Shown: positions 6,001-61,674 of the stretch, one piece after another
Position numbering within the stretch: position 1 is the stretch's first letter
Layout of the letters: every line of letters begins with the position of its first letter
Source of the DNA: Adineta vaga
Taxonomy: Eukaryota; Animalia; Rotifera
DNA length: 64,000 nucleotides
NCBI GenBank assembly: GCA_021613535.1
Contig: CP075494.1
Coordinates: 3,906,001 to 3,970,000 of the forward strand
Direction of reading: 5' to 3'
The notes under the pieces: generated by a model
The model's database searches: none
Seen by the model: only the letters and a program-made list of their open reading frames with translations
Told to the model about the DNA's origin: nothing
Translations under genes and position numbers: made by a program

Positions 6001-6764
6001 AAACATAAACATTCATTTTCTACTTCTGTTTCTATCCTATTAGGTATGGAAATATTCTTGTTGAGTTCTACAATTTCACCATGTAACTTGAGAGAGATAT
6101 AAAAACGTAAACATAAAACAGATTTCTCGACACATGATGGCATAGAGAAGAAATCATTATACATATTTTCCAGCTCTTCTGTTAATATCTTAGATCTCAA
6201 AACGTTCTCGCTCTCGACTTCTAATTCTGGTATTGAGTCATTTTCTGCATAAAAAAATTCATCATTACTTGATTTGTCCATAGTAGAATATTGAAGTTCT
6301 TCGACTAGTTGTAACAAAGTGCGAATAGTTGCATTGGAACTTTCTTCCGGATCATCGTATTTTGTTTCATTTGTTAACTGTAATTCAATATTTGGATAAA
6401 CATTTTTAAATGAATTCTGTAATGTGTTTAAATCGATGTTAGAGCTACTGAACGAATCAACAAGTTCGGCTCGTTCAATACTTCCGTTTGATGTACATTT
6501 AAGGAATATTCCAATCCAATATACATCATTGAATTGATAAGGTATAAGAATAATACATTCTTGATATTGTAATGCTTTCGCTTCTTGTAATCGTGTTGTC
6601 CATTCATTAGCCACATTATTATGAACAGTAGGTAATACATGATTAAATTTTGAGCACTGTTCAGAATACTGATGACGTAAGTTTTTTAATCCATCTGATA
6701 ATTTGTCATAAACGCGATCTTGTAGATCCTTATTCGAATTGTTGCTTTGATTGCTATTACCCAT
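1..6764 (-). CDS. Giant P-loop GTPase / long helical region / SecA-like SF2 DEAD ATPase protein (3' end beyond window; two apparent frameshifts)
   Basis: ORF 1818-6764 has Walker A GGTGSGKS and G3-like DSPGFED. Coding continues through 1652-1873 and then a third frame open from ~1719 to base 1. My translation of that frame gives FQPHAAQV, EVGTGEGKS (439-459) and LLIDEVD (DEVD at 136-147), matching the SecA motifs TGEGKT/DEVD. Confidence 0.8.
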
Positions 6765-41064: not shown

Positions 41065-44000
41065 TCATTCATCTTTCCAATTTAGTTGCACATTTCGCAT
41101 TACTAAGTCTTCGATACGTGTCCATGTCTTAGTAATTAAACAATAACTAACGTCAAGCTTTATTATCGTCTAAATTGAAAAGAAAAGAAAATTATTGATC
41201 ATTCAATAGTGAAACAATGAAAACTACTTTATTCTGTTCTAATGCTTCAACAAGGAAATGCGATCCTTTCTCTCCAATACCAGTGTTTCTAATATCCAAT
41301 GCGGTTAATGTCTATTTCAAAGCGAAAGTCAAACTATGTTAAAATCATAATAATCAGATTAAATACTGTGTTATTCTCTAAAATATTGGCAATATATTGT
41401 GCACCTGTATCTCCGATTTGATTACCAGCTAGATTCAATGTAGTCAATATCTAGTAGGAATAAGAAGACAAATCTATAAAGTAGAGTTGGAAAATAATTA
41501 ATACTGTGTGATTTCGCACTGTCTCAGAATGACGTAATCCATGTTCTTGGATAATATTGTTGCTAAGATCGATCCTACTCAACGTCTAATATGTTAGATG
41601 GAGAATAGAATGAGAAGAGAAGAGAGACGGGATGATTATTACTGTATTTTTCCGTAGTGTCTCAGAGAAATATTGTGCTCCTTGATCTCTAATAGTATTG
41701 CCACCAAGAATTATCGTTGTCAATGTCGTATTGTTTTGTATTGCATCAGCCAGATATTGTGCTCCATTGATACCAATCTGATTTCGTTCAAGATTGAGTG
41801 AGATCAATGTCTATGTTAGAATATTAAACCACATCCGAGATAATTACAGAAAAAAAATCATCATTACCTTACTATTTCGTAGTACATCAGCTAAATATTC
41901 TGCTGCATGACTATTGATTTGATTACCGCTGAGATCCAGTGTAGTTAATGTCTATGCAATAGATCTTGATAATAAGTACGAAAGATGGAGAGAAAAAAAT
42001 TCGAATTACTGTATTGTTACGCAATGCATTTGCGAGGAATCGAACTCCATCTATGCCAATATTATTTGTTGGAAGGATAAGTGTAGTTAATGTCTATCAG
42101 ATAGAATCAATACAAATACATGAAAATGTTGAAAATACGATAGATATCACTGTGTTTCTCATAAGAGCATTAGCAAGATGTTGTGTTCCTTCATTTCCAA
42201 TTTGATTCCGTCCAAGATCGAGAATAGTTAAAGCCTGCTCGAATAGATCAGACAGATAGAAAAAAGGTACGAAAAAGTGACTTTTACTCTATTCTGCTGC
42301 AAAGCACGTGCAAGATATTCTGCTCCTTGGTTCTTGGTTGCATTGTTTTGTAGACTAAGTGTAGTTATTGTCTGTTTCACAAAACAATAATAAGAGGAAA
42401 TACAAACAAAATAAGAATTACCAAGTTATGCTGGAGCGCATTGAAAAGCTGCTTGATGCCTTGTTCTGTGATACTATTACGTCCAAGATCGAGCTTAGTC
42501 AACGTCTATTGAAAAAAAACACATGTATACCTATAGAAGACCAAGAGCATAATAAAAATCACCGTGTTCTTCGTTATTGCATCAGCGAGATATTGTACAC
42601 CCGTATCGTCGACTTGATTGTATTCAATATCTAGTGTAGCCAATGTCTATTTCAAGAAATAAAAGAAAAATAAAAGAGATTCGAAGAGAGAGTGAATGTC
42701 ACCGCATTTTTTAGCAATGCAAAAGCGATACATCGTATTCCTTCGTTGCTGATAGATATACATCCAAGTTTCAAATCAGTCAACGTCTATTTAACAAAAT
42801 CGTGATACATAACAACCTCAAGGGAAAAGTTATCATTACCATATTCGTTAGCAGTGCATCAGCAAGATAAAATGCTCCTTGATCTTTAATTTCATTGAAT
42901 GAGAGATCAAGTTTGAACAGTGTCTGTAAAATACAATGAATATAGATGTGGAATAACAATAAGAGGCATATAGAACTTACTTTATTGTGTAGTAGTACAT
43001 CGACAAAATATTGTACTCCTTGCTCCGTTATAAAATTTTGTCGGAGGCTAAGTGAAGTTAATGTCTTTCAAAAAAAGAATGGGAGTAGATAAATGAAAGA
43101 TAACATAAAATTTGTTGATACCTTATTTTCTCTCAGTGCATTTACAAGATAGAAAGCTCCTTGATCATCGATACTACTGGAATCAAGTGCAAGCGAATGC
43201 AGTCTCTTTTATAAAGAAACAATGATCATTATATAGATAGTAAGATAATAAATGTTACCGTATCAGTTCGTAATGCTTCAGCGAGATACTGAGTACCTAA
43301 ATTACCGATACGTTGTGTCAAAGTGAGACGTGTTAAGGTCTACATACAACATAAAAAATATTGAAAATGGGCATTTCTTATGTTCCAAGAAATCGATACA
43401 TACTTCTGCGATGATCATTTTGCTTGTTTCATTTGTCCATCTTCTGGTCAGAAGACGGATATTACTCGTGGATGATATTTCACATCGAAATACGGTTTCT
43501 ACATCATCATTCTCATCTACGTTCGTATAAAGTCTGATTTCAGAAACGCCAAATCGTTTTTTCATTGTAAAATCACAAGTGACTAACCAACGTTTATGAT
43601 CAAGCCAAAATGGTGATTGAAATGTCTTAATAATGGAACTAAGACTAGGAGCCTGCTTTTCCTGGAGAGGCGAAATGATTTTGAAACAAAACTTGAATTT
43701 ATTTAACGAAGGTAATTTCGTTTGAATGAGTTCTTCCCAAAAATAACCGTCGAATATGGAATCAAAGCGGGACAAACATGAACCGAGTTTGAGATAAACA
43801 AGTGACGGGGTCGATGAAAGAACCAGCTGGAATTCTTCAATTGAATATCGACAGTTACTAATAGTCAGAGACGTCAACTGCGGGTAACATTCATTAGTCA
43901 AAGATAATGAAGGTTTTGTGTAAATATATTTCGATGCAGCAAACTGTATTATGAGTGTTTGTAGTTGAGATAAACGGCGAAGAATTAAGAAATAAATGTC

Positions 44001-44597
44001 ATAAGAACATTCTCTGATTGAGAGATATGATAGAGTGCAGTGAACAGGCCATGAAATCTCTGTAATATGATAGTTGTGATTTTCCAAATGAAACTTCTGA
44101 AGTCGATTATATTGAGCAAAGAATTTTGAGAGAATAGTGACAACATGATTTACTGGCGAATTGGATGCATTCGTACTAGAATAATTTAATTTATAAGAAT
44201 CGACTGTCAGCGAGACTAAAGAATCGGTGGCAAAATGTTCCAGAAATCGTTCCAGATTTGTTTCCTTGATTTGATCGAGAGTCAACGAATGCAGCCGAGT
44301 AAATTGAGTAATTTCAAATATTGAGAAGAATAAATCGATGTTGTCTGATGTTTGTTCGTCTTTGTCGGAAGCAATTATTGCAGTGACATATTCAGGTCGA
44401 ATAAAACGAGAAACAAATCTTAGATGTGATTGAGATATTGTAGTAAGATCAACACGAACTCGGTCATAGCTATTGATGGCAGCATTGAATCGTTTGCAAA
44501 CTAACGGTATCGATCTAAGAGCAGTCTGACTATCGAGATAATCAAAAATCCGATGAAGAATTTCAGTAGGTAAATTGATAAAAGTTACGTTCGACAT
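41065..44597 (-). CDS. F-box protein with C-terminal array of about 16 ribonuclease-inhibitor (NLRC3-like) LRRs
   Basis: Large first exon with LPTEILHRIFDYL and donor at 43403. It is followed by repeated ~84-nt exons TLT.L.L..N.I...G...LA.AL..N.T with ~140-bp period; stop at 41065-41067. Confidence 0.85.
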
Positions 44598-45514: not shown

Positions 45515-48500
45515 ATGGCATCAAATGAAGAAATGCGTCGTTGGCGTGTTGAAATAACGTCTCTTCCTAAAGTCATTACCGTAGATCAATTAGCTTTATT
45601 ATTGCAGCTCGATGATGCCTCGCGTATTTACATTCCACAATGTCAGCCATCTTTAACTTATTATGCATGGATCAATAGCTTTGATAATGAACAAGATGCA
45701 AATGATTTTGCGCAGCAAAAATCAGGATTAATCCTTTCGAATTTATCCATAAAGTGTGTTGCAGTTAAACCGAAAGACGACGAAGCGAAAGAGAAACGTC
45801 AGCCACTAAGAGGTCTCGAGGATATTCAACCATTGATGAGATCTTCATCAATGAGTCTTATTCCAAACGACACTAATATAAGTGACTTTCCAGAGCATCA
45901 AGAACAAACAAACGAGAAATTTCATCGTCAGCAACAGCATCGAACTGCAAAAGAACGAGAAGGTAAGCTCTCATATTCACCTAAGAGAAGACAGTTAATT
46001 CAATAGAAAAATATAAATGCATTTTAGGAAGACCTGCGACACCAATTATTAAACCGAAGCTTCGCAATTCCTCCGCAAAAAGACAACTCATAGAGACAAT
46101 TGAGTTGAGTAGTGCTCAATATAATTTTCTTGAATCTTTTGGCAACAAAGTCATCGCTACGATTCGCAAGGAACCAGGTATCGTAGATGTGAAAGTCAAG
46201 GAAGGTAAACTTTACCTATCAGGACCCAGTTCCGTAATAATAAATGTGAAATCTTATTTAAATCAAACACTTCATGAGCAAAATGTAACAATTACTGCTG
46301 TATTGAAGCAATATTTGGAAAAATATGGTAAACCAACTTTTTTAAAGCGATTTTTACAAAAGTATTCTGTTGGAATATCTTCTACTCAAATATTAAGCAA
46401 CAGTCCGTTGACTGTTAAGAACACAACTATCAATAGACCTCTTGATAGTAATCCTGATGGAGATCAATCTGAAGATGATGACGATGATGCCAAAAGTGAT
46501 ATTTTAGGTGCGTCAGCAAATATCACAGCTGGCACCGTACATCTTAAATGCCGTCGTAGTCGTGCTCAAAATGTTTTTATTCAAGTAACATTATGCAGTG
46601 ATTCAGAAGATGTGTTATCTAAAGCCATCAAAACACTACGAAGTTATTCATTGCATGATCAATCAGAAGTATTAACACAAGATGAAATCACATTTATTGT
46701 AAGTCAATTGCCAAAAGGAAAACTTCCTTTACAAAAGAAGACTACAACTCGTGAGAAGTCTTTCCAAATCAAAGATTATCTCATACGATTCATTCAATCT
46801 AATACAAATTCAACCGTACAGATCTTTATAGATTATAAAAATGGTATATGGTATTTAAAAATGAGAGGATTCAAAGATCACGTGAGCAATGCTATGTCCA
46901 AGATAAAAAACTGGCTGAATGATAATGTCCAAACTGAAATACAACTTCCAATTTCAAAAGTAATGGCAATTTTTCTTCGAACAAAAGGTTCATCCGATAT
47001 TAAAAAGCTGGAAAAAACTTATTCTGTAAAGATTACTAGTTTCTCACCACGAATCTGTAAACATGCGAACGATGAGCAAGATGATGATGACGATGATCAT
47101 CATTGTTTAAAATTGACTGGTTCTACCTTACATATAAGTTTAGCACAAACAAATGTTGAAAATTTTCTTGATAACTTATTCGAACAAGAAAAAGATTTTT
47201 CTTGTCCTAGCTGGGATATTGCAAAGAATATTTCTCAAATTCTTCGTGGGCATCTGAAAAAAATACAAGACTCAGATGACAGTCACGTGATAGGCTGGAT
47301 TAAATCTTATACGACAGCTGAAAGACTGGATACATTACCAAAAATCACTTTAACATCAGTTGGTCGAAATGCAGAAGCAGTGGATGATGTCCTTGAACAA
47401 TGTCAAGGTGTTATCGACGGATATGTTGTTTGGAAACCGTCTTCAGACGAATATCGTGCGATAAAAAATGCATTACTAGGGAGAAAAACACCGTCTATCG
47501 ATGAATTTCAACAACAATGGAATACTAATATACGTATGGATCGGGAAACGAGTACGATCATCATTCCTGCAAGATCAAAAATAATTGCGGATGATATTAA
47601 AGAAGCTTTGTTGAATTTAACTGAAGAAACGAAAACACAAATAAATCGTATCTCTGAGTGCATTCCTATTCCATCCACGATTCGTCGTTTTGTAAATCAA
47701 ACTATCGATTCTGTACTCGAAGAAGCCAGATCACAAAGAGTTTATATAGAATCGAAAAATCCTAATAGAATAACATTCCATGGTCGTTCTGATATTGTCA
47801 CTGAATTGAAACAAAAGATGAATTCAATTATCGATGATATTCAAGCAAAAAGTATTACGCATCGATTGACATTATCAACAATCGAGTCGGACTTTATGCG
47901 TGCGGAAAAATACAAATATCCAACTCGTATTGAACGAGACACAGATACTGTCATTCGAGATATTAAAGCCGATACAGCTACTTCCTCATCGAAGATTATC
48001 GATGATGATTTCCACTCGACTCTAACTACAATTGTCAATCATCGTGGTCAAACCATTGTCGTTGAAAAAGGTGATATTACAAAGGTTAATAATGTCGATG
48101 CGATTGTTAATTCAGCAAATGGATCATTGTATCATGCGGGTGGTGTCGATAAAGCAATTGCTGATGCTGCTGGTCCGACAATAGTTCAAGAATGTCAACA
48201 AATAATTGCTCGAAACAATGGTATGCCTATTGCGGCAGGTAAAGCAGTAAAAACAACAGCTGGAAATCTTCCTTTCAAATGTATTATTCATGCCATTGGT
48301 CCTCAATATACTGATGGAAATCGACACGAACGTCCACTTCTATTTTCGAGCATCTTGAAAAGTTTACAATTGGCTGAAGATGAAGGTTGCAAAAGCATTG
48401 CTATACCAGCAATCAGTTCGAAAACTTATGGTTTTCCGTTAACGGATTGTACAAATATTCTTGTTCGTGCAGTTAAACAATTCTTTGCTGATTATCCACA

Positions 48501-49959
48501 ATCAAAGATGAGAAAAGTAGTTTTTTTAGATCTTGATGATACAGTTTGTAATTCATTTGCACGTGAATTAGTTGTTGATCATAGCAACACAGTTTTAGAC
48601 AATGATGATAATGATCTTGTCAATTTTGAACTACCTCCATTAACTGCTAGATGGTGTTGGCAAGACGATTATGATGAAAAATTATGTACTGATAATGATA
48701 TTCGTACAATTGAAAATGCATTTCAACAATATTTGAAAACTTTTACTCCATCAAATTTAAAAATTGCTCCCGATAATTTAAGGAGTGGTACTATTGTTAT
48801 TTATAGCATCCATTTCATTCCTGATCTAAAACGAATATTAATAAGTAACCCAAATGCACTCAATAGTCGACTTGTATGCGGATATCAAATGAGAGAGAAT
48901 ACTGGTTATAAAAGACATCTCATTCGTTACCCAATAGAAGTAATACAACAACAACAACAACGAATAAATCAAACAAAACGTATTGCATATCATCCAAAAC
49001 CATTAGATTCATATGAATTACAGACAAAAACCACAGAAGAGTATTGGGATATTATTGGTATGACGAATGCGTCAATAGTGCAAGCAGAAAAAGCAATTAA
49101 AGCAAGTATTCATTCAGCTACTGTTTCCGAATCTTTCTCGATAAATCTCAACAAAGACATTGACGTTCATAAGAGCGAACTCATGAAAATTGCCATTCAA
49201 GTACAAATCGAAATTATTTTCGAAGAACCATCTTCCCAACAACTATCAATGATATTGAAAGGATTAAAAGCGAATGTATCAGATGCAAAATTAAAAATTG
49301 CTTTATATGCTCAAGATATTTTAACAACGCAAGTTGAAAATGATGATGAATTACGCATACCAAAAGAATGGGGTGATCAAAAAGAAGAATGCAAATTAGT
49401 TGAAATCAGTAAGAATGATCAGAATTTTATTCGAATTGAAAATCGGATGAAAGAAACAATGTTAGACATTAAAATCGACAAAATCGAACGAATACAAAAT
49501 GTACGACTTTGGAGTCACTATGCATTTCGTCGTCGAGAAATGAAAAAAGAACTTCGTATTATGCCAAATCTACAAATTGAAATGGAACTCTTTCATGGAA
49601 CAAGAGATGCATTACCCAGTGAAGTTTATAATGGTGATTGTGGGTTTGATATGAGATTTAGTACAAGTGGAATATGGGGAATTGGAACCTATTTTGCACA
49701 AAAAGCTTCATACTCTTGTAATAGTTATGCATATAGTACGCCAAATGGTAAAAAACAAGTGTTTTTAGCACAAGTTTTGACAGGAGATGTGTATGATTGT
49801 CAACCAAATGGATCTTTACGTCATCCTCCGAAGAAAAATGAGCGAGTCTCTGGTCTAAGATATAATAGTGTATCAGGCGATACAGGAGGAAGTAAAGTTT
49901 ATATTGTGTATGAGAATCGTGTCGCTTATCCGACTTATTTAATCACTTTCAGTTCATAA
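45515..49959 (+). CDS. Macro-PARP (PARP14/15-like): RRM-like, KH-like, macro, WWE-like and ART domains
   Basis: Macro motifs GDITK..DAIVNSAN..LYHAGGVDKAI, HAIGP and SIAIPAISS. WCWQDD is WWE-like. ART motifs LFHGT, GIGTYFA and VYIVY...YPTYLI. Intron ~45963-46027. Confidence 0.9.
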
Positions 49960-50026: not shown

Positions 50027-52078
50027 TTAGTTTGTTTTTTTAATAAACGATGAATGGCCATACTTTTCTAACCATTTCAGTTCTTCTCGAACTTTAATTT
50101 TTCCATGCCAAGGATCTTCAATTAATGCATGCCCTTCATTTGGGAAAAGTAATAATTCAACTGGAACTCCTAAATAATGTAGGCCGCGTTCTAACATATA
50201 ACTTTGATCAATTGGAACTCGAATGTCATTTGCGCCAGTAACAATATGTGTTGGCGTACAAACTTTATCAAGTTGATAGAGAGATGATTTATGTAGATAT
50301 TTATGTGGTATTTCCCAAGGTAATCCACCAATGATTACTTTGACAAACTCAGATAAATCTATTCTACCCCAAAAAGAAGCATAATCAACTACTCCAGCAC
50401 CAGACAGAGCAGCATTGAATTGGGTGGTTTGTGTAATTAACCAATTAGTTAAAATTCCACCATAACTGAAACCACCAATAGTAAGTCTATGTGGATCAAC
50501 AATTCCATCTTGAATTAAACGATCAATACCAGTTAAAATATCTTTTCCTGGTCGATCTAATGAATAACCAATGACTTCGTTCACAAATTGATCACCATAT
50601 CCAGTTGATCCTCGATAATTGGGTTCTAATACTAACCATCCTTCTGTTGCTGCCATAGGAGCCCAACTATACCAATCTGGTTGGAAGAAATTGAGACTAG
50701 CATCAGTAGGACCGCCATGAATAAGTACAAGTAATGGTAAATTCTTGCCTCGAAAATTTCCCACTGGATAATGTAGAATACCTTCAATCGTACGATTATC
50801 ATTTGGATTAATCCATTGATATGGTTCTGCTTTAGGTAATTCTCGTTGAGTAAAAAGGAAATTATCATTTGTAATGACCTTTGCTGATCGAAGGTTTTCA
50901 ATGGAATTGACAAAATAGACTTCTTCGGGTTGTTCAAACGATGAGTAACTAAATGCTAAGGATAATTTTCGTTTCTGTAATGATGAAGATATAGTGTGAT
51001 AAGTTCCATTCCATCCATCTAATAAAGTGGAATCTTTCAATGAGGATTGTTGCATATAAATGTGTACATTTGTTCCTAATTGTCCAAGATAGTAAACACC
51101 ACCGTCAGATCGAATTGTATATCCTCTAATACTTCCAGAAAAATCTTTTCCCCATTGATTAATTTGTCCATTAGTTAAATCAACTGAATACAATCGTAAT
51201 TGTGTCCAAGGTCCATGCTTTGTTCCAAGTGGAAACATTTGAAAGAATACGTGTTTACCATCTACTGACAGTTGTGGACTGAGTTCTAAACCTTCGTTAG
51301 TTGTTAATCTAGTTAAATTATATAGGTTATGTAAATCAAGTGAATATAATTCAAAAACATCGGTTTCTTCAACAATAATTGCACCCGATAATAAAATAAG
51401 TTTCTCTTTGCATGGAGTAAATAATAATTCGCTCACTAGAAAATTTATACTCTTAATGGGAATAATGGTAACATATGTTCGTCGCTTTCTTCGGTGAATA
51501 TCAATACGATAAATGCTGCTATTATCACTAGGTTTTGGATGACGATATCGAATAACATCTTTCCATTCATTTTCATCGTTTGTTTTATTATTATTGTTAT
51601 TGTTGTTGTTGTCTTCAGTCATTAATGACGTGAAATAAAGACAACTCTCATCATTCGACCATGTTAGAGCAGTTGGAATTTTATTACCAAGGTCAATAAA
51701 GAACGATTCATCTTTGATAACATGATAGAGTTGAAGATGTTGTTCTACTTTTGAATTGGTAGAAGAATTTTGATTGATTAAGAATGCAATGATATCTCCG
51801 TCTGGGGACCATTTTGGTGTAATGATTTGAGATAGTTGATTTGTGATTAATTTTCTTTCTCGGGATCGTTTAGTTGAATAAAGCCATAGACTGTTCTCAA
51901 ATTTATTCGACTCCCATGCTGGAGTCTTAGTATGAACGAGTACATAACGGCCATTTGGTGAGAGATTTATTGATGGAAAAGAAGTCGAATTAAAAAATTC
52001 ATCGAGAGTTAGTTTTGGATATATTTGAATCGACAAACATGATGAGAATGTCACTAAGATTAACAGATACAACTTCAT
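50027..52078 (-). CDS. Secreted S9-family (prolyl oligopeptidase / acylaminoacyl-peptidase-like) serine peptidase
   Basis: Signal peptide, beta-propeller repeats (WSPDG), IHGGP, NYRGSTGYG, nucleophile GFSYGG, DIRV and EGH; intronless. Confidence 0.9.
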   Translation of the reverse strand: MKLYLLILVTFSSCLSIQIYPKLTLDEFFNSTSFPSINLSPNGRYVLVHTKTPAWESNKFENSLWLYSTKRSRERKLITNQLSQIITPKWSPDGDIIAFLINQNSSTNSKVEQHLQLYHVIKDESFFIDLGNKIPTALTWSNDESCLYFTSLMTEDNNNNNNNNKTNDENEWKDVIRYRHPKPSDNSSIYRIDIHRRKRRTYVTIIPIKSINFLVSELLFTPCKEKLILLSGAIIVEETDVFELYSLDLHNLYNLTRLTTNEGLELSPQLSVDGKHVFFQMFPLGTKHGPWTQLRLYSVDLTNGQINQWGKDFSGSIRGYTIRSDGGVYYLGQLGTNVHIYMQQSSLKDSTLLDGWNGTYHTISSSLQKRKLSLAFSYSSFEQPEEVYFVNSIENLRSAKVITNDNFLFTQRELPKAEPYQWINPNDNRTIEGILHYPVGNFRGKNLPLLVLIHGGPTDASLNFFQPDWYSWAPMAATEGWLVLEPNYRGSTGYGDQFVNEVIGYSLDRPGKDILTGIDRLIQDGIVDPHRLTIGGFSYGGILTNWLITQTTQFNAALSGAGVVDYASFWGRIDLSEFVKVIIGGLPWEIPHKYLHKSSLYQLDKVCTPTHIVTGANDIRVPIDQSYMLERGLHYLGVPVELLLFPNEGHALIEDPWHGKIKVREELKWLEKYGHSSFIKKTN

Positions 52079-52331: not shown

Positions 52332-53585
52332 TCATACATCATCATCATTGATCTTTATTGCAATTTGATTCAACATAAGTTTCAGACGAGGATCAATAAT
52401 AGGTGCTGTGTCCGTTGCGATTCTATTCATAACATAAGCAAAAGTAAGATTTTTAGAGGGAGCTGCAAAACCAATACTTCCACCAGCTCCTAGAATAGAT
52501 AAAAACAAGATTTGTTTCCTAATCTCATTGATGATGTTCTCTCTCTCTGGCTCACCATGGTGACCAAATACATCCGGGCCAAATAAAGGAAGAGCATGAC
52601 CAAATCGATGGAAACCCATACTAAATGAGGAATTATATGGTAATACAAGATCCATCTCATTTGATGGTGTATTCGATTTGATTGCATATTTCAAAATTTC
52701 ATCATTTACTAACTCTTGTCCCGATTTATCTTTAATATTTCCAATAAATGTTGCATAGAGACGTGCAATTGACCAAGCATTTGTGAATCCGATGGCAGCT
52801 GGAATTTCTGCTTGATGTATAGTAGAATCATTCCATATATTGAAATAGTTTATCATGGACTCATTTAATGTACTTCTAACACCGACATGAGGAACAACTG
52901 GCGAGACGCGATATTGTAGATAAGGAGGTAATCCAATGTAAAATTCTGTTTCCGTTCGAGTGACTAGTTCATCCTGAAGAAATTGTCCAAATGTTCTTTT
53001 CTTTGGATCTACACGACGAACAAGTTCACCAACTAACCAACCATAGGTAACTGAATGATAACCATGAGCTGTTCCGGGTACCCATGCTGGTCGTTGTTTT
53101 TCTAGTATATGAATCATTGCTGTCCAATTCTTATATTGTTCAATTGGTGATGATACATCTGGAAGACCAGAGCGATGTGATAGTATATCAGCGACTGTTG
53201 TATTCTCCTTTCCATTTTGTCCATATTCCGGCCAATACTTTGTAACTAACGCTGAATAATCGAGTAAACCCTGTTGAACACAAATTGCAGCGGCCATTGC
53301 TACAATTCCTTTTGTTGTCGAAAACACCAACTGTAATGTGTTCTCATCGTAGGGTTTCGAATGTGCTTCATCAAACCATCCGCCAGTAAGATTTACTACA
53401 GAACGACCTTGGTAATATACTGCTACAGCTGCACCTAAATCTTGCTGTTCTCGAAAGTTTGCTAGAAATATATCACGTACAAACTCCCATCCATGCTCTG
53501 TTGTACCATGTATATTGTAATCAGGAGAAGGATAACAAAATACAGTGGAAAGAACTCCAGTTACGATCCATATGAAATAAAACAT
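52332..53585 (-). CDS. Secreted beta-lactamase-family serine hydrolase (EstA/AmpC-like) with one 66-nt in-frame intron
   Basis: FSTTK (SxxK), ILSHRSGL and HGYH. FGHHG|AGGS is restored by removing the GT-AG intron 52490-52555. Confidence 0.9.
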   Translation of the reverse strand: MFYFIWIVTGVLSTVFCYPSPDYNIHGTTEHGWEFVRDIFLANFREQQDLGAAVAVYYQGRSVVNLTGGWFDEAHSKPYDENTLQLVFSTTKGIVAMAAAICVQQGLLDYSALVTKYWPEYGQNGKENTTVADILSHRSGLPDVSSPIEQYKNWTAMIHILEKQRPAWVPGTAHGYHSVTYGWLVGELVRRVDPKKRTFGQFLQDELVTRTETEFYIGLPPYLQYRVSPVVPHVGVRSTLNESMINYFNIWNDSTIHQAEIPAAIGFTNAWSIARLYATFIGNIKDKSGQELVNDEILKYAIKSNTPSNEMDLVLPYNSSFSMGFHRFGHALPLFGPDVFGHHGEPERENIINEIRKQILFLSILGAGGSIGFAAPSKNLTFAYVMNRIATDTAPIIDPRLKLMLNQIAIKINDDDV

Positions 53586-54871: not shown

Positions 54872-56668
54872 ATGAGTTTGGAAGTATTGGCTAATGAATT
54901 GTTATTGGAATTGTTCGAATATTTTTCTACCCACGATCTTTTTCATACTTTTATTGATCTCAATGCTCGCTTCAACATTCTTCTGCTGACACATCTCCAA
55001 AAATATCATCTCGATTTTCGATCCATATCGAAAAAACGTTTTGATACAATTTGTCAAAGTTATTTGCCATTGATATCCAATAGAATTATCTCTCTTACTC
55101 TTTCGGACGACAATGAAACACCAGATCAGATCAATACTTTTCTATCTTATGGTTTGATTCTTCATGGATTCATTAATTTACGTTCATTGAGATTATATCA
55201 TCTTCGATCGGCTATTTCAATGCAAATAATACTAACAAAATGTCATCAACTTCCATATCTTATGCATTTGAATTGCATCGATTGTTCTTTTAAAAATGAA
55301 GATGAGTGGCTTTGTGAGCAGTTGAACAATATTTGGAGTCTATCAAAACTTATTCATTGTCATTTGGACATAGATTTCGAAAATCATTATTATATTGTTA
55401 ATCCATCAACAATTTCCATTGCACTTCGAAGACTTTCCATTGAATCTTACAGTTATGGATTAAATGAATTATGTCGTCTATTAGAAAACTCACCTAATCT
55501 TCGATATCTTTCTTTATTATTAGGAAATGATTTAGAAAATCAATCCGTTGTTTCTTTTCCTATTGCATCAATAAGTACATTGAAACTATCCGTTTACGAA
55601 TCATCATCAACAACGATGATATATCTTTTAAAAAACGTATCTCATCTACGTCAATTGACTGTCAAAACCGATGAAGTGAATATGAATGGACATGATTGGG
55701 AGCAATTAATTACAGATCATCTAGTTAAATTAAAAGTATTTGAACTTCAAATGATATTCCGTTTGAATGATAATGATAACAAAGAGCAACGGGTTGTAGA
55801 TCTATTAAATTCATTTCGAACTCGATTTTGGCTTATTGAACGGCAATGGTACGTCCGATGTGATTGGAATCGTTGCGAACAATGTGATAAAAATAATATT
55901 TATCTTTATACGCTACCCTATGCTTTCGATAATTATTTTGTCCATGAATTAAACTTTAAATCGAGCTCAACTTATGTTGCAAATCACGATCTTTATTCGT
56001 CATATGATCATGTTCATACTCTTGCATATGAACTTATTCCTGCGGATAATACAATTTTAACTTTCTATCGCTTCTCTAATATATATCATTTGGATCTACA
56101 TCTTCCTTTCCATGAAAGTTTTTTCATTATGATACCCAATTTAGATCAATTAATTACATTGCGAGTAGAACCGTATCATGTAAACGACAATTTCGATCCT
56201 CAAAATCAATTTCAAACGTTACTCAATCGAACATCTCGTCTTGATTCATTAACATTCATAAATTGGTCATCATCTTCAAAAGAACGACCTCCTTATCAGT
56301 ATTCGAATAAATCGATACGTCAACTTCATCTACAAGATGTTGAACGATCCTATGATAATGAACAGTGTGCTAGTTTAATTCATTCACCGTTAGCGAATCA
56401 ATGTGAAGTGCTATCGATTTCCATTACAAATCGCATGAACCTACTAGATTTAATTCAAAAGATGACTAATCTTCGAGCTTTGAATGTTATATGTCAAGAT
56501 GATACATGGGAGATTAATAAAGACAACTTAACATCGTCATCAACGGATGAATTGATTCAGTGGTTGATAGAGCATTTACCATCGACATGTGTCATTACCA
56601 GACATAATCACAGTATACAAAATAATCAACAGATTTCCTTTCGACCTATTCACGTATGGATTCGATAA
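54872..56668 (+). CDS. F-box/LRR-like protein, paralog of 39105-40850
   Basis: MSLEVLANELLLELFEYF, FRTRFWLIERQWYVRC, YLYTLP; ends VWIR. Confidence 0.85.
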   Translation: MSLEVLANELLLELFEYFSTHDLFHTFIDLNARFNILLLTHLQKYHLDFRSISKKRFDTICQSYLPLISNRIISLTLSDDNETPDQINTFLSYGLILHGFINLRSLRLYHLRSAISMQIILTKCHQLPYLMHLNCIDCSFKNEDEWLCEQLNNIWSLSKLIHCHLDIDFENHYYIVNPSTISIALRRLSIESYSYGLNELCRLLENSPNLRYLSLLLGNDLENQSVVSFPIASISTLKLSVYESSSTTMIYLLKNVSHLRQLTVKTDEVNMNGHDWEQLITDHLVKLKVFELQMIFRLNDNDNKEQRVVDLLNSFRTRFWLIERQWYVRCDWNRCEQCDKNNIYLYTLPYAFDNYFVHELNFKSSSTYVANHDLYSSYDHVHTLAYELIPADNTILTFYRFSNIYHLDLHLPFHESFFIMIPNLDQLITLRVEPYHVNDNFDPQNQFQTLLNRTSRLDSLTFINWSSSSKERPPYQYSNKSIRQLHLQDVERSYDNEQCASLIHSPLANQCEVLSISITNRMNLLDLIQKMTNLRALNVICQDDTWEINKDNLTSSSTDELIQWLIEHLPSTCVITRHNHSIQNNQQISFRPIHVWIR

Positions 56669-56997
56669 ATTATCATATGAAAACTGATTGATGTTCTTAA
56701 CCGCTTGTTGTTTTTTTTGTAAAATTTTCTAAAGCTTCACTTACTTTTTCCTTTTGCATTTTATATACCAATAAAGTAGATATAGAAAGATGTACATGAG
56801 AATGTAAACGTATATGAAGAAGAGAGACCTTTTCACATATATTAAAAGTTGAACGAAGAGCAATAAGTCTCGAAGAAAAATATATGGATTATTTAGTGTA
56901 AAGGAAACAAAAACGATTATTATACTCTTCTGACTCTCTATTTTCTAGTCATATGGACATCTACATACTCACCCACGCCCTCAATGTTTATAAGCGA

Positions 56998-59900
56998 TTA
57001 AAATTGTTTTAGAGCCATGCTGAAAGATTGTTTATCCACTTTACCATTGTTTAATAAATCAGGGTTAACTTCAATGAGAGGAGCAAATCTTTTCAACCGT
57101 AATATTTCCAACGCTTTGTCGTGCGCTTGACTCGCATCTTCATATTTGTGTCCCATAGCTCTATGGAATCCTTCAATTAGTTTGTTACCACTTGTCATAT
57201 TTGTATAACTATCGTATAGTTCGTCGATTAGAGATCTCGACATTCGTTCATATAACGGATAGTGACAATTATCTCTTTCCCAGCTATTACGGGCCATTTG
57301 ATATCTAGTAACTATAGAATTTACCCATTGATCTTTTTGTGCATTATACCATTGATGTCGATCGATATATAAAGTTTCGTGTAATGTGTCTGTTTCATGA
57401 TTCACTCTTATTACTCTAACTGAAGTAATGTTCGCATTCTTCATTACGACTTCTAATTCATTTTCACGAAAGAATGAATCTATGTCTGTATCATCTACAT
57501 TGAGACTGATTTCACCACTGGCACATGCAGCAAAACCCAAAATATAAGTAGGTGTAACTTGTTTTTTGACGCTGTAAGGGATGCTCGAATCATCCCACAT
57601 TGCATTTAGATACGGTAGTCCTGCTTCTGTCATGGCTACTGTATGATAAAGATCTTCACATGTATAATTATCTTCGCTCTGCAATTCAACTTCAGCATTC
57701 TTCTCTACTAGCCAACGTTCAACAATAATTCTACTGAGTCCGTAACCGAGAGGATGCGAAGGAATGTAACCACCAGACCATAGCACTGTTTTATGTGGTG
57801 GAGCACTAATTCTACCGCATGCTAGTGCTTTTTCTGCAAATTCAACAGTATAGAATTGAGCTTTCTCTTCTTCAGTATAATGTCGTGGACATATATTTGT
57901 AAGACTCTGAGCAAAGCGTGTTTTCTTAAATACATCGGAAAGTTTATCTGGACTTATTGTTGAATAATCGTAAGGCCTATGGTTATAACCACTGTAATGT
58001 AGTTCATTTCTTTTTGTAGTAACATGATGCTGAATCAATGACTTTGCAACTATACTGGCGCTACAACGAATAGCCGGAATTGTTATTGATTCGGGATGTG
58101 CACCACTAACGATAGGTCCCAGTGCATAAAACCTTGGTGACGGTTCACCTTGAGCATTGATGAGTCTAAAATGATCATCAACATCGAGTCCTCCACTATG
58201 GTACATTCTTGCCAAACCACTGAGAACAAATTCTTTAGCACACACAGGCATTTGTTCTAAATGTTTTGATGGACCAGTGTTATTGACAATTTTAGTTGTA
58301 TGCACAACTCTAATAGATCCATCTGAATTTTTGATAGTCAAGTTGAAACCGGTACCCATGGCAATTTCTATATATTGTAATCCACCCGAAATTTCAAGTC
58401 TTCCTTCTCGACGAAGTTTATTGACCTGTTCCCATTGCTCATTGGGAATTCTATATCTGGCACAAGACCACATTGCTTCATATTTTTCAATGAAAGATTT
58501 CTGTTCACTCTGACTCATTGCTCTCCACAACGTATTTGTGTCAGAAAACATTGAATCTACTACATCTCGCCATTCAAATCCTGCTGCACGAGCAACTGTC
58601 ATTTCTTCCTTGAATAGTTGCATCAAATAATCAGCTGTTATATTTGTTATCGTCTTGTTCGCTTCTTCTACAAACTTCTCAACTGTACATATACTTCTAG
58701 TGTATGGCTTGGATCGATTAGCTACATGAGGCACTCGACCATTTCTAGACACCAATAAAAATTTTCCACTATACCCATGATCCACTGCCCATAGAGCAGA
58801 AAAACATGCACCATTTCCTGTGCCGACGATCACAGTAAAATTCGTTTCATTCACATTTTCAGGAGTAAATGCATGATCATCAAGATTGTAATAACCATTT
58901 TTGCCGCACAAAGTATTACCATCTTTATCTATGAGTGGTTTTGGATTAGCATTTCCTAAAGCATAGATGACAGCATTAGCGAAAATTTTCTTTCCGCTTC
59001 CTATGGTTACCACACATTTACATGCTGCTGTATCTTCCGTAGATTTTATTACTCTGTCACGAATGAACTTTACTTTTACTGGAGCTTTGTTTGCTTCAAG
59101 AAGCTGTATCATTGACTCGAGATGATCGCGGATATACTCTCCAAACTGCACATGTGTGACACTTGCTTGGGGATCAAAGCCTTGATCCTTTATATAAGTC
59201 ACATCACGAAATATATTCTTCCATTTTTCTGGATCTTTATTGATATGTTCAATACAAGCCGTTGATGTTTCCATTCCCAGACCTCCTATTGGATTAGCCA
59301 TAGTAACCCTTGTTGGTGACGCTCGATTATATGTATAACCTCCTGGATTGCTGATAGAATCAATTATATTTAACTCCAAAGTGTAACCGAAAGAAGTAGT
59401 ATTAAGAAACTCTTGAATGAGATACGTTGCCGCTAGAATTCCACTCGCACCTGCGCCAACAATAACTATCTTGGTAGAATAAATATCATTTGTAATTACG
59501 TGGCTCGTTTGAAATTTTTCTCTACTATACGGTTCTTGTAGTGGAATATCATCTTTTTCGATTGCACTATTATCCAAATGATAATATGTTCGAAAACCGA
59601 CATGTTTAGCTATGACATGTATTCTACCAGTAGCATGTTTGACAATCAAAGCACCGTCATAGAATTTTTCTGGTTCTCCAAATGGTTGATGTAATTCTCC
59701 AGCACCTTCTATATAAATTGCTCGACAAATTTGTGTTCCTTTCCGTTGTTTCCAGCCATATGTGGATGCAGGCATGTTTTCATATCCTGGAACATTCTCC
59801 ATCATTTTGTTTATGAAACCAACGTTTGAAGGATAGTAGTTTGTAAGTCCTAAACTCTCTGCATAAGCAAGAATTTCTTTAAGTTGTGGCATTGTAATTG

Positions 59901-61674
59901 TGTCTGGATCACCGTATTCATCTAGTTTTTTCTGCAGTTGTATTGCTTGATCTCGAGTCACTTCATTTAAGACTATAACATTGCGATCGTCATTTTTAAG
60001 ACCTGAGATAGCGGCCAACCACTGATCATTGATGCAATTATAAAAAGCGAAACCTTTGCCACTAATAATATCATTTTCGCACTTTAGAGGATCACCTTGA
60101 TGAAATTCTTCACCAGATTTGTACTTGCCATTTCTCGTAATCTGAATGGTTTCACCCAACTGTGGTACGCTGAGAATGAACTTCTTTGCTACAGAAATGA
60201 CTGGTATTGATTTATCATCGCTGAAATCGAGATCATGTGCTAGGAATATTGGTATACCAATACTTTTTCTAGAAGATTTTCGAGCTAATTCAGTAAGTCG
60301 CTTAGTAGCTGCATCAAGCGTTATATTGCCATCTAATATTGATTCAAATGGTGGACAATATGTGTGATAAATATCAGGCGAATATTTGAACACATGATTG
60401 ATCACATCACGATCAGTTATTTCACAAGTAAGATATTTCGCAATAATCTCTATCTTGTTACCAACTGTCGGAGCCTCGTCAAATGTCTTTTGCCAGATTT
60501 GTGGAAGTTCAACTTTTCCGTTAACATAATCATTAATCATTGAAGAAACTAGATGTTCGAATGGCGCTGTAGCAAGAAAAATATTTTCACGGCAAAAACG
60601 AGCAAATTTTTTGAATTGTTCATTGAGAGCGAGAGAAAACTCAACGCATACATGATCAAGATTTCGTATATCTTCGGCATTGTGAATCAATTGCGAATCT
60701 ATGGCGTTTTTCAGGTTTGCTGTTGTATTATCAATTAAGTCTTGTATTAAAGCTTCGCGAAAAGATGTAGCAAACCTCTGATAAAGAAATCCCATTATAT
60801 CAGTATCTTTGTAGATGATATTTTTAAGAAATTTACTATGCTTATTGTATGGATCGATGATCTTATATTCAGTTACGAATTGATCAACTGTTCTATCCAA
60901 AATGTGCCAAGCAAATGGAAAGTTGTTCTTTATCATTTCCGGTGTAAAACGTCCTATACGAAGTCCATCTTGAAGATCACTTATGTTGAAAGATAAACGA
61001 TCAGATTGAGCGGCTATTTGACCTTCTATATGGTTAAAACCATCAAACTTCATTGCATTGTTATGTGTTAGATCGATACTTTTTACTATATCGGGAATTT
61101 CCGCCATATCATGGTTATAAAAACTGCATTGTTTATTTTGATCATACTGCCAAAATCGTTTGATAATACCTTCGATGAAAGTTGGAGACAAATTGCAACC
61201 ATCTTTTGCATCTTCCGCCCAATCGGTGAGTATTCTGATACTGGCTATATCATGATTCCAGTTTAATCCATGAGGTTCTATAGCTTTTTTTATTGCCAGT
61301 TGACCCCAATGAGCAAACGGCGGATGGCCAATGTCATGAACCAATCCTATATTACCTGCTAAGAGCTGACTTTCTCTACCCAATCCCAATAATCTTGCTA
61401 GTTCTTCGGCTGTATCTTTTACATTTATAGAATGTATTTCACGATTTGTCAGTCGTGGGTCACTATAATTTATTGCAAATTGGTAAATATCGCGAAGTCT
61501 TGCCCATGCACGACTCCTTAGAATATTATTCCGATCATGTTCGAATACTGCCACTACACTCGTAGTACCTTCTAATAGAACTGAATCAGCTTGATATGAA
61601 GCGCTTCGATTATTAAAGTCAAAACAGTGACCTATATGACAATTAGTACTTGAACCGAGATGATTGTTGGACAT
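56998..61674 (-). CDS. 1558-aa fusion: dGTPase-type HD domain + unknown domain + FAD/NAD(P)-binding oxidoreductase + putative ADP-ribosyl cyclase/NADase-like domain
   Basis: HD part: FEHDRNNILRSRAWARL, REIHSINV, VHDIGHPPFAH, EGQIAAQSD...DLQDG. Flavoprotein part: IVIVGAGASG, IVGTGNGA, LVSRNG, IVNNTGP, FYALGP. C-terminal part: VLWSGG, TEAG, FAACASG, SFFRENEL. Confidence 0.85.
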   Translation of the reverse strand: MSNNHLGSSTNCHIGHCFDFNNRSASYQADSVLLEGTTSVVAVFEHDRNNILRSRAWARLRDIYQFAINYSDPRLTNREIHSINVKDTAEELARLLGLGRESQLLAGNIGLVHDIGHPPFAHWGQLAIKKAIEPHGLNWNHDIASIRILTDWAEDAKDGCNLSPTFIEGIIKRFWQYDQNKQCSFYNHDMAEIPDIVKSIDLTHNNAMKFDGFNHIEGQIAAQSDRLSFNISDLQDGLRIGRFTPEMIKNNFPFAWHILDRTVDQFVTEYKIIDPYNKHSKFLKNIIYKDTDIMGFLYQRFATSFREALIQDLIDNTTANLKNAIDSQLIHNAEDIRNLDHVCVEFSLALNEQFKKFARFCRENIFLATAPFEHLVSSMINDYVNGKVELPQIWQKTFDEAPTVGNKIEIIAKYLTCEITDRDVINHVFKYSPDIYHTYCPPFESILDGNITLDAATKRLTELARKSSRKSIGIPIFLAHDLDFSDDKSIPVISVAKKFILSVPQLGETIQITRNGKYKSGEEFHQGDPLKCENDIISGKGFAFYNCINDQWLAAISGLKNDDRNVIVLNEVTRDQAIQLQKKLDEYGDPDTITMPQLKEILAYAESLGLTNYYPSNVGFINKMMENVPGYENMPASTYGWKQRKGTQICRAIYIEGAGELHQPFGEPEKFYDGALIVKHATGRIHVIAKHVGFRTYYHLDNSAIEKDDIPLQEPYSREKFQTSHVITNDIYSTKIVIVGAGASGILAATYLIQEFLNTTSFGYTLELNIIDSISNPGGYTYNRASPTRVTMANPIGGLGMETSTACIEHINKDPEKWKNIFRDVTYIKDQGFDPQASVTHVQFGEYIRDHLESMIQLLEANKAPVKVKFIRDRVIKSTEDTAACKCVVTIGSGKKIFANAVIYALGNANPKPLIDKDGNTLCGKNGYYNLDDHAFTPENVNETNFTVIVGTGNGACFSALWAVDHGYSGKFLLVSRNGRVPHVANRSKPYTRSICTVEKFVEEANKTITNITADYLMQLFKEEMTVARAAGFEWRDVVDSMFSDTNTLWRAMSQSEQKSFIEKYEAMWSCARYRIPNEQWEQVNKLRREGRLEISGGLQYIEIAMGTGFNLTIKNSDGSIRVVHTTKIVNNTGPSKHLEQMPVCAKEFVLSGLARMYHSGGLDVDDHFRLINAQGEPSPRFYALGPIVSGAHPESITIPAIRCSASIVAKSLIQHHVTTKRNELHYSGYNHRPYDYSTISPDKLSDVFKKTRFAQSLTNICPRHYTEEEKAQFYTVEFAEKALACGRISAPPHKTVLWSGGYIPSHPLGYGLSRIIVERWLVEKNAEVELQSEDNYTCEDLYHTVAMTEAGLPYLNAMWDDSSIPYSVKKQVTPTYILGFAACASGEISLNVDDTDIDSFFRENELEVVMKNANITSVRVIRVNHETDTLHETLYIDRHQWYNAQKDQWVNSIVTRYQMARNSWERDNCHYPLYERMSRSLIDELYDSYTNMTSGNKLIEGFHRAMGHKYEDASQAHDKALEILRLKRFAPLIEVNPDLLNNGKVDKQSFSMALKQF

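Follow-up and report, generated by a model that had tools for sequence, protein, structure and literature searches.

Two questions are raised by an ORF in the 64,000-nucleotide stretch of Adineta vaga DNA analyzed here (the window): what would a bdelloid rotifer do with a single protein that joins a bacterial-type dNTPase to a flavoprotein and an NADase-like domain, and is this really a gene of the animal? The ORF (56998..61674, minus strand) is the sole long ORF there, complete and intronless, and encodes 1558 aa plus a stop codon (protein P0001). An earlier note had described it as uninterrupted and made of four modules, and both the ORF and the module positions were confirmed. Along the minus strand, module 1 is a Dgt-type HD dNTP triphosphohydrolase domain (aa 35-430, 60385..61572), module 2 is conserved and has no recognizable fold (aa 431-734, 59473..60384), module 3 is a YdhS/HpyO-type FAD/NAD(P)-binding flavoprotein matching PF13454 (aa 735-1205, 58060..59472), and module 4 is an ADP-ribosyl cyclase (ARC; CD38-fold) domain with a C-terminal helical extension (aa 1206-1558, 57001..58059). 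No signal peptide or membrane anchor was evident in P0001, suggesting that it is a cytosolic enzyme.

Lacking introns and being of bacterial type, the ORF also has a GC content (0.35-0.375) slightly higher than that of its flanks, as might be expected if it came from a contaminating bacterium, arose by chimeric assembly, or were a dead relic. However, the gene lies 3.96 Mb inside a chromosome-scale contig of 16.9 Mb, as one full copy in a 100.8-Mb assembly of six contigs, and a DNA contig from an independent 2013 run joins its 3' end to the neighbouring ORF. Two haplotype variants are present in both the DNA and the probable RNA runs. Orthologues were found in three other bdelloid species, full length in Adineta ricciae and Didymodactylos carnosus and as the flavoprotein region only in Adineta steineri, and within the single clade of rotifer sequences the branching agrees with the species order. 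Furthermore, there are no internal stops, and each module has a dN/dS near 0.2 (range 0.16-0.31; 0.20 in module 2). Contig position, bridging, haplotypes, orthologues and dN/dS together already contradict an artefact, which we consider very improbable, and the fusion gene is truly integrated in the animal genome. The chimera or contaminant that the earlier note had wished to see checked is contradicted by the same observations. The flanking F-box gene that it reported was not found next to the fusion: the adjoining ORF (54872-56668) has no F-box match, and the F-box ORF lies at 43302-44597.

The fusion gene is probably transcribed, which bears on the question of expression that had also been put forward as a check. 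Contigs from several probable RNA runs (X1, X2 and X5 were presumed to be RNA) match the ORF and short UTRs, covering only 56908-61722, whereas the DNA run covers everything. The contigs of three probable RNA runs all stop at 56908/56909, delimiting a probable 3' UTR (56908..56997, minus strand), and the 3' contig ends lie ~10-15 nt past an A/T-rich ATAATAAT stretch. Contigs of the probable RNA runs likewise delimit a probable 5' UTR (61675..61722, minus strand). One 5' contig then skips ~310 nt and resumes at 62033. On the gene strand, the skipped stretch opens with GT (62032-62031) and closes with a polypyrimidine tract and AG (61730-61721), so that it may be a 5'-UTR intron, although five letters at the joint are unmatched.

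The assignment of module 1 to the bacterial Dgt family, made before from its motifs, was borne out by profiles and by alignment to a known dNTPase. The module matches the Pfam HD model (E 1e-6), TIGR01353 dGTP_triPase (E 7.9e-32, aa 44-368, profile positions 5-315 of 389), and the PADLOC dGTPase model (E 8.3e-32). It also matches the Thermus thermophilus dNTPase 2dqb (E 2.5e-15), with the H...HDxGHPPFxH...ExQ...D...DxxDG motifs aligned and the metal-binding residues H81, H113-D114 and D225 falling on those of 2dqb. The metal and catalytic residues H81, H113, D114, H117, H122, E217, D225, D233 and D236 were verified and are invariant in a six-sequence alignment (A1), and the Dgt-specific motifs HDIGHPPFAH and IEGQIAAQSDRLSFNISDLQDG are both found. 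Nevertheless, the curated family cut-off was not reached by TIGR01353 (111 bits vs 152), and all equivalog models scored far below theirs. The HD module is thus a divergent Dgt subfamily rather than an equivalog. It fits the housekeeping-type PRK01286 models (PRK01286.1-3, profile positions 32-386 of 404) more fully than the anti-phage dGTPase model NF041026, which it matches in the N-terminal third only (positions 18-163 of 425; 56 bits vs a cut-off of 400). Like Dgt-family enzymes, anti-phage dGTPases included, of which SAMHD1 is a functional analogue, the rotifer domain has the HD fold and every Dgt motif. It differs from them in its fusion to three further modules and in scoring below all equivalog cut-offs, and its identity to stand-alone Dgts is only ~25%. 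Depletion of dNTPs by stand-alone dGTPases defends bacteria and is a proven antiviral strategy (bioRxiv 10.1101/2021.04.26.441389).

Between the HD domain and the flavoprotein, the earlier note had set apart a domain that it could not name. This region is indeed conserved and has no assignable fold: no Pfam, PDB or stand-alone homologue of module 2 was found, and it was seen in fused forms only. The two-Rossmann flavoprotein that was proposed to follow it is supported by a PF13454 NAD_binding_9 match (aa 737-908, E 2.7e-12, 47.4 bits vs a cut-off of 21.8) and by two GxGxxG/A dinucleotide motifs (G740-G745 and G951-A956). Its named relatives are YdhS, HpyO and CreE (PF13454, COG4529), which share the NAD_binding_9 domain and two dinucleotide-binding motifs with it, at an identity of only 22-27%. 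This family is of monooxygenase type, and the flavoprotein need not be a "sensor". To our knowledge, no member of it works with an HD or ARC enzyme.

Sequence profiles and structure both point to an ARC fold for the structural core of module 4 (aa 1271-1439, 57358-57864), where an NADase-like domain had been placed at 57800-57400, an interval that corresponds to the catalytic core. Pfam PF02267 did not match the rotifer domain and matched the distant family member P0019 only below the cut-off (E 0.0018), whereas a profile of 23 family sequences matches Aplysia ADP-ribosyl cyclase (E 8.7e-8). The AF2 model of the domain (pLDDT 90) has a Z-score of 10.8 to 9ro8 and 9ouf and of ~7 to CD38, and the top Foldseek rows are all ARC/CD38-type NADases, apart from a few that represent a Vibrio MARTX NADase domain. 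Of the four canonical catalytic residues, the domain has three. The essential Glu, E1406 (codon 57457..57459, minus strand), is aligned to Glu179, the catalytic Glu of Aplysia cyclase (CD38 E226), and is invariant in 23/23 family members, within an S-x-F-R-x-x-E motif. W1299, in a WSGG motif (codon 57778..57780, minus strand), aligns with Aplysia W77 (CD38 W125), and E1319 aligns with Aplysia E98 (CD38 E146) and is invariant in the close subfamily A5, not in distant members. The second canonical Trp (CD38 W189, Aplysia W140) is missing, as T1374 occupies its position in the profile alignment; an invariant Trp, W1360, sits 14 residues upstream. In Tac1 and CD38, the second Glu favours hydrolysis over cyclization.

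The closest solved structures are Tac1 (PDB 9ouf, a T7SS LXG toxin) and ARCtox (PDB 9ro8, a T6SS PAAR toxin), both NAD(P)+-depleting toxins (PMC12356396, PMC12605009). Superposed on 9ouf and 9ro8, the ARC model aligns over 126/127 and 133/148 residues with an rmsd of ~3 Å and 18-20% identity. The rotifer domain has in common with these toxins the minimal CD38-type core, the first Trp, both Glu residues, and a C-terminal placement in a multidomain protein. However, it does not conserve the second Trp, members of its family carry ~120 additional aa of helical extension at the C-terminus, and it is animal-encoded, with a dNTPase and a flavoprotein fused or linked to it. P0001 and the Pfam matches listed for the loci L001, L083-L088 and L092 showed neither a trafficking domain (PAAR, LXG, Rhs, CDI) nor an adjacent immunity gene; L094 and L095 were compared by ORF structure and similarity. 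With metazoan CD38 and Aplysia cyclase (PF02267), the domain shares the fold and the catalytic motif (W77, E98 and E179 corresponding to W1299, E1319 and E1406). In contrast to them, it has no disulphide-rich N-terminal lobe, and the CD38 chain aligns only partly. The metazoan CD38 lineage is not that of the rotifer domain, whose nearest relatives are bacterial and whose protein is predicted to be cytosolic.

Full-length fusions were found in two bacterial lineages that read TGA as Gly, one represented by L085/L086 (27% identity over 1529 aligned columns) and the other by L095 (31% over 1442 columns). The search for the full architecture that the earlier note had proposed was therefore positive in both bacteria and other rotifers. 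The same modules recur in looser associations. A giant bacterial protein of high GC (L084) has the HD, middle and flavoprotein domains followed by Zeta-kinase, ARC and methyltransferase regions. In L001, one chain runs from HD through the middle domain and the flavoprotein to a Zeta-like region and is followed by a gene starting with an ARC domain, and in L083 and L092, isochorismatase, HD, flavoprotein and ARC are separate adjacent genes. The ARC of L083 is fused to AAA_33 (a P-loop kinase), with an IMPase-family gene alongside. Zeta/AAA_33 kinase domains are fused to or beside ARC in P0008, P0012, P0006 and the neighbouring gene of L001, and several multidomain proteins that are otherwise unrelated also contain the ARC module, among them one that has a weak YopJ-like region. 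Because the modules are fused or adjacent in bacteria and bdelloids, we regard them as a conserved unit that was transferred horizontally to rotifers. The horizontal acquisition suggested before is upheld by these full-length bacterial fusions and by the nesting of the rotifer clade among bacterial and metagenomic homologues. Matches amounted to only a handful among 5.8 and 1.8 billion proteins and, with the patterns used, to none among 185,579 species genomes. No description of the HD-middle-flavoprotein-ARC architecture was found in the literature; it appears to be undescribed, in line with the novelty claimed for it.

In the bacterial neighbourhoods there are an isochorismatase, kinases of AAA_33/Zeta type, a phosphatase of the IMPase family and a methyltransferase; known defence genes were not observed there. 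These enzymes suit a theme of NAD and nucleotide targeting just as well as they suit a pathway that modifies or salvages nucleotides in several steps. AvrRxo1-type Zeta kinases phosphorylate NAD, and the bacterial ARC-linked kinases, absent from the rotifer protein, are likened to them by domain only. NAD-phosphorylating Zeta-type kinases are known effectors (PMC5491322, PMC5087710).

Combined depletion of dNTPs and NAD(P) by the fusion is our best reading, held tentatively at somewhat short of an even chance. Since bacteria keep the same enzymes together, the linked enzymes probably act as one nucleotide-attacking unit. We infer the following scheme, in its catalytic activities, the role of the flavoprotein, the gating and the biological role alike. 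The Dgt-type HD domain would convert dNTPs to deoxynucleosides and triphosphate, and the minimal bacterial-type ARC at the C-terminus would cut the nicotinamide-ribose bond of NAD+ and NADP+, with the presence of E1319 favouring hydrolysis over cyclization. ARC enzymes can cleave only the oxidized form, NAD(P)+. The flavoprotein could convert NAD(P)H to NAD(P)+, opening the whole pyridine-nucleotide pool to the ARC, and the middle domain may serve to connect the modules or to gate them. In the rotifer, the protein might be latent and cell-autonomous, serving as a conflict or defence effector by depriving a replicating parasite of dNTPs and NAD. The domain assignments, the intact catalytic residues, the co-occurrence of the modules, the toxin nature of the closest solved structures, the precedents of defensive dGTPases and NAD-phosphorylating Zeta-type kinases, dN/dS and the coverage by probable RNA contigs count for this reading. 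Counting against depletion are Thr1374 in place of the second canonical ARC Trp, the HD scores below the Dgt equivalog cut-offs, the fuller match of the HD domain to housekeeping-type than to anti-phage models, and the flavoprotein family, whose members are substrate-hydroxylating monooxygenases rather than dedicated NAD(P)H oxidases. In addition, neither a sensor nor an immunity protein or secretion domain was recognized, a cell that steadily expressed a dNTPase and NADase without gating would be harmed, and the reading of X1, X2 and X5 as RNA runs is a presumption.

The monooxygenase affinity of the flavoprotein would be accommodated by a biosynthetic or signalling pathway, a somewhat unlikely alternative. 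The HD domain would free a nucleoside from a triphosphate, the HpyO/CreE-type flavin monooxygenase would hydroxylate or N-oxidize the base or the pyridine, and the ARC would build an NAD- or ADP-ribose-derived product by base exchange or cyclization; in bacteria, the kinase, phosphatase, methyltransferase and isochorismatase would tailor it into a signal or an antimetabolite. The clustering of five to six different small-molecule enzymes in L083, L092 and L084 resembles a pathway rather than a single effector, no immunity gene was recognized beside the ARC genes, and there are bacterial ARCs that release cADPR and are not toxic (PMC12356396). However, the closest solved structures are NAD(P)+-depleting toxins, the close subfamily conserves E1319, the pathway has no product that we can name, and the rotifer fusion lacks all four tailoring enzymes, yet is under purifying selection.

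A housekeeping or scavenging role, which we consider distinctly unlikely, would have dNTPs and NAD(P) broken into transportable or recyclable pieces, as would suit nucleotide-auxotrophic epibiotic bacteria, and could serve pool homeostasis in rotifers, e.g., around desiccation and DNA repair. The TGA=Gly bacterial copies lie beside ordinary genes (S15, S1, RecG, TsaE), the isochorismatase genes nearby would agree with a recycling of nicotinamide, the HD domain lies closer to the Dgt models of housekeeping type than to the anti-phage one, and expression is apparently steady in several probable RNA runs. The extremely patchy distribution argues against such a role, as do the integrase adjoining the gene in L085/L086, the location of the L084 copy inside a giant multidomain protein, and the recurrence of ARC in unrelated multidomain proteins, which is typical of conflict modules and not of core metabolism.

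A wider possibility, which we think unlikely, is that the HD/middle/flavoprotein/ARC combination represents an unrecognized mobile multi-enzyme conflict module common to TGA=Gly Patescibacteria-like bacteria, giant bacterial conflict proteins and bdelloid rotifers. Such a module would exhaust both the dNTP and the NAD(P)(H) pools at a single stroke, by means of an NAD(P)H-oxidizing step of its own, or make a toxic or signalling nucleotide analogue by monooxygenase and ARC base-exchange chemistry. If this were true, an animal would have taken over an entire bacterial device for nucleotide warfare and made it an effector of innate immunity.

The focal gene of Adineta vaga occupies window positions 56998-61674 on the minus strand as one uninterrupted 1558-aa ORF without stops; no longer ORF exists in this part of the window. 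Its N-terminal module contains a Pfam HD domain (aa 79-157). The NCBIfam model TIGR01353 (dGTP_triPase) matched aa 44-368 with an E-value of 7.9e-32, and several PRK01286 dGTPase models were covered over nearly their full length; TIGR01353 and these models alike scored under the curated cut-offs. The PADLOC dGTPase model was also matched (E 8.3e-32). The best solved relative was the Thermus thermophilus dNTPase 2dqb (E 2.5e-15), with which the histidine, HDxGHPPFxH and ExQ...SD...DLxDG motifs align, and the catalytic residues, checked directly together with their codons, are invariant across six full-length homologues. Judged by these models and motifs, the module is a divergent member of the Dgt-type dNTP triphosphohydrolases, although it is not an equivalog of the anti-phage dGTPases.

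The flavoprotein module has an NAD_binding_9 domain (PF13454, aa 737-908) and two dinucleotide-binding motifs. Among proteins with a name, it comes closest to "NAD(P)/FAD-binding protein YdhS" and to proteins with a "HpyO / Asp monooxygenase CreE-like" domain, and a PDB search with its profile returned generic Rossmann matches only. We regard the flavoprotein as YdhS-like. The single ORF, the Dgt-type HD domain and the flavoprotein had all been proposed in an earlier note from the sequence alone, and all three hold.

Between these two modules lies a middle domain (aa 431-734) that is under purifying selection and is kept in all fused homologues, including the bacterial ones. It had no matches in Pfam and no profile matches in the PDB, and no stand-alone homologue was found among the proteins within the length limit of the search. 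Its AF2 model was of moderate quality (pLDDT 68) and gave no match with Foldseek. A kinship with 2H phosphoesterases was considered and rejected: the VIA-wide best Z-score of 4.2 was treated as noise, and the family has no invariant His for the HxT/S motif.

The C-terminal domain alone matched nothing in Pfam, NCBIfam or PADLOC, and the best score in an ESM Atlas feature search was 0.77, without a usable lead. An exhaustive HMMER search with this domain only found 24 relatives among 1.84 billion representatives. A profile built from 23 relatives matched Aplysia ADP-ribosyl cyclase (ARC; E 8.7e-8) and a Pantoea ARC toxin (E 0.006). In the profile alignment, W1299, E1319 and E1406 correspond to Trp77, Glu98 and the catalytic Glu179 of the Aplysia enzyme, and none of the 23 sequences departs from S1400, F1402, R1403 and E1406. 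For this domain, AF2 gave a confident model (pLDDT 90.2, pTM 0.88), whose best Foldseek rows were nearly all ARC/CD38 proteins, the few exceptions being the Vibrio MARTX NADase domain. On re-alignment, it superimposed best on two bacterial ARC toxins, ARCtox (9ro8; Z 10.8, 126/127 residues, rmsd 2.9) and Tac1 (9ouf; Z 10.8, 133/148 residues, rmsd 3.1), followed by CD38 entries at Z ~7. Each of these toxins cleaves NAD+ as well as NADP+ by hydrolysis and needs two Trp and two Glu residues (PMC12605009, PMC12356396). The earlier suggestion that the protein ends in a CD38-like NADase thus gains real support from the profile alignment and the structural matches as far as the fold is concerned. However, one of the four canonical residues is absent, since the second Trp of ARC enzymes (Aplysia W140) aligns with T1374 in the profile alignment. 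The domain represents a new ARC clade whose closest kin are the minimal ARC toxins of bacteria. The focal protein falls outside the defined sense of polymorphic toxins because no trafficking domain or immunity gene was recognised. The clade also occurs in further architectures. In P0015, a 968-aa protein from Logan, an ARC-clade domain follows an N-terminal region with a weak match to YopJ acetyltransferase (E 5e-4, under the cut-off), hinting that some members of the clade may be secreted effectors.

The full four-module architecture was found both in other rotifers and in bacteria. Close full-length relatives (69-81% identity) carried the labels Adineta ricciae or Didymodactylos carnosus or came from metagenomes, and an Adineta steineri protein matched the flavoprotein region. 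Database names were only "unnamed protein product", "uncharacterized protein" and "predicted dGTPase". Among the bacterial and metagenomic loci, L085/L086 and L094/L095 contained almost no long ORFs in genetic code 11 and many if TGA is translated as sense. The TGA codons within these reading frames lie mostly opposite Gly of homologues, indicating by alignment the use of genetic code 25 (Gracilibacteria/Absconditabacteria-type). In P0016, as translated in the database, W stands at these codons. Translated in code 25 where they contain TGA (L085, L095), the ORFs of these loci yield proteins with all four modules, 1531 and 1461 aa long; across more than 1400 aligned columns, their identity is 27% and 31%, respectively. 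Both fusions sit among ordinary bacterial genes, and an integrase adjoins the one in L085/L086.

Other bacterial loci carry the same parts in different arrangements. In L001 (GC 37.5%, tightly packed genes), the protein P0006, 51% identical over HD, middle domain and flavoprotein, has a weakly Zeta-like end, and the product of the next gene, P0010, begins with an ARC domain of ~56% identity. In L084 (GC 71%), HATPase_c, HD, middle domain and flavoprotein lie within a protein of several thousand residues. The gene call there (L084:1-15841) is split at 10001, with an upstream product of 4995 aa, and the next call (P0012) carries the C-terminal third of the flavoprotein followed by Zeta-kinase, ARC and methyltransferase regions. 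Since P0012 opens with the rest of the flavoprotein, both calls probably represent one giant protein. In L083 (GC 51%) and L092, the parts are separate adjacent genes, with isochorismatase and HD sharing one strand and flavoprotein and ARC the opposite one. L083 joins its ARC to an AAA_33 kinase in a single protein and has an IMPase-family gene and a giant Zeta/DUF4116 protein nearby; its neighbouring unassigned genes do not encode the middle domain. A prokaryote scan of one genome per species (185,579 species), whose two-peptide-pattern query reaches fused rather than split-gene forms such as L083, returned among the matches listed only stand-alone Dgt proteins of ~25% identity. A metagenome scan with the alignment of the close ARC subfamily (A5) returned three loci only.

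The focal gene is present as one full copy in the 100.8-Mb, six-contig A. vaga genome, in which the window spans 3.906-3.970 Mb of contig 5. The chromosome-scale contig 1 carries a decayed HD fragment (15872696-15873127) with 40% identity to aa 44-190 and six in-frame stops, the pseudogenised remains of a related HD gene. A 2013 DNA run spans the focal ORF and both flanks, and one of its contigs bridges the neighbouring ORF and the 3' end of the focal gene. Three runs, recorded without an RNA label, resemble transcriptomes in that their contig totals fall far short of the genome size. These probable RNA runs cover 56908/9 to 61688/61722 with an identical 3' end in all three, and their intergenic bins are empty. 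One contig jumps ~310 nt upstream of the ATG (window 61721-62032), with five unmatched letters at the joint; on the minus strand, the skipped stretch opens with GT (62032-62031) and closes with a polypyrimidine tract and AG (61730-61721), making a 5'-UTR intron possible. Comparison with an orthologue of 81% identity from a metagenome contig gave a dN/dS of 0.21 overall and 0.16-0.31 per module. A contaminant or chimeric assembly was ruled out by the single copy in the six-contig genome, the bridging DNA contig, the dN/dS values and the rotifer clade in the tree, and we regard an artefact of any kind as hardly credible.

In the maximum-likelihood tree of the HD, middle-domain and flavoprotein region, the rotifer sequences formed one clade (100/100) with Didymodactylos as its first branch. 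L001 was sister to this clade (88/93), and the remaining bacterial forms branched deeper; the tree is rooted at the midpoint only and its bacterial branches are long. Taken with the contexts of the relatives and the 185,579-species scan, we read this topology as pointing to one ancient transfer, in which an already linked bacterial unit would have entered the bdelloid lineage.

The surroundings of the gene differ from the earlier description in one respect. The supposed flanking F-box gene, a 598-aa neighbour at 54872-56668 (plus strand), gave no F-box match and nothing beyond a CARD match under the threshold (E 0.087); the ORF with the F-box, of 431 aa, lies at 43302-44597 (minus strand). Two adjoining long intronless ORFs on the minus strand look bacterial, a prolyl oligopeptidase of the S9/DPPIV type (50027-52078, 683 aa) and a beta-lactamase family member (52332-53585, 417 aa), and the region around them may be rich in acquired genes. 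An intronless 1284-aa ORF at 46105-49959 (plus strand) combines a Macro domain (E 4e-32) with a PARP catalytic domain (E 6e-15). This is another NAD+/ADP-ribose enzyme, and it lies just ~7 kb away from the ARC gene. Farther away, an intronless 1648-aa ORF at 1818-6764 (minus strand) has only a weak GTPase P-loop match.

Alignments and gene contexts show intact cofactor or catalytic motifs in the three predicted enzyme modules and a linkage of these modules across phylogenetically distant bacteria. The reading that we tentatively prefer, at somewhat less than an even chance, is a combined attack on nucleotide pools. The HD domain would hydrolyse dNTPs, and stand-alone dGTPases act in bacterial defence through dNTP depletion (bioRxiv 10.1101/2021.04.26.441389). 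The ARC domain would perform an NAD(P)+ glycohydrolase step; it retains E1319, whose equivalent promotes hydrolysis in Tac1 and CD38 (PMC12356396). The flavoprotein may oxidise NAD(P)H. ARC-type NADases use only the oxidised dinucleotide as substrate, so that such oxidation would feed the ARC domain. The bacterial partner genes fit the nucleotide-pool theme: the isochorismatase-family partner could take away nicotinamide, and NAD phosphorylation is known for Zeta-type kinases (PMC5491322, PMC5087710).

Several observations speak against a combined attack, however. The flavoprotein family consists of monooxygenases, one ARC Trp is absent, no sensor or immunity partner was found, and such an enzyme should be harmful if ungated. 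A tailoring or signalling pathway built on ARC base-exchange chemistry is an alternative that we consider rather unlikely. The modules could also serve nucleotide and NAD scavenging or homeostasis, which we judge improbable.

We found no paper on the HD/flavoprotein/ARC combination, whether fused or conserved as a gene neighbourhood, nor any on bdelloid ARC genes. Each assigned domain of the focal protein belongs to a known superfamily; what is unusual is the presence of the combination in an animal. Depletion of dNTPs (SAMHD1, bacterial dGTPases) and destruction of NAD+ (TIR, SIR2, SARM1, ARC toxins) are both major outputs of immune systems and toxins, and to our knowledge have so far been known only in separate proteins. 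Here a predicted dNTPase and a predicted NADase lie in one chain, together with a flavoprotein, and the recurrence of this linkage across unrelated bacteria, fused or as neighbouring genes, argues for a hitherto undescribed functional unit. Further outcomes are a new CD38-fold enzyme clade, a conserved domain without a recognised fold, and a candidate role for a YdhS-type flavoprotein beside a predicted NADase. As a conserved and apparently expressed animal gene, it provides a concrete case for the recruitment of bacterial conflict genes by bdelloids.
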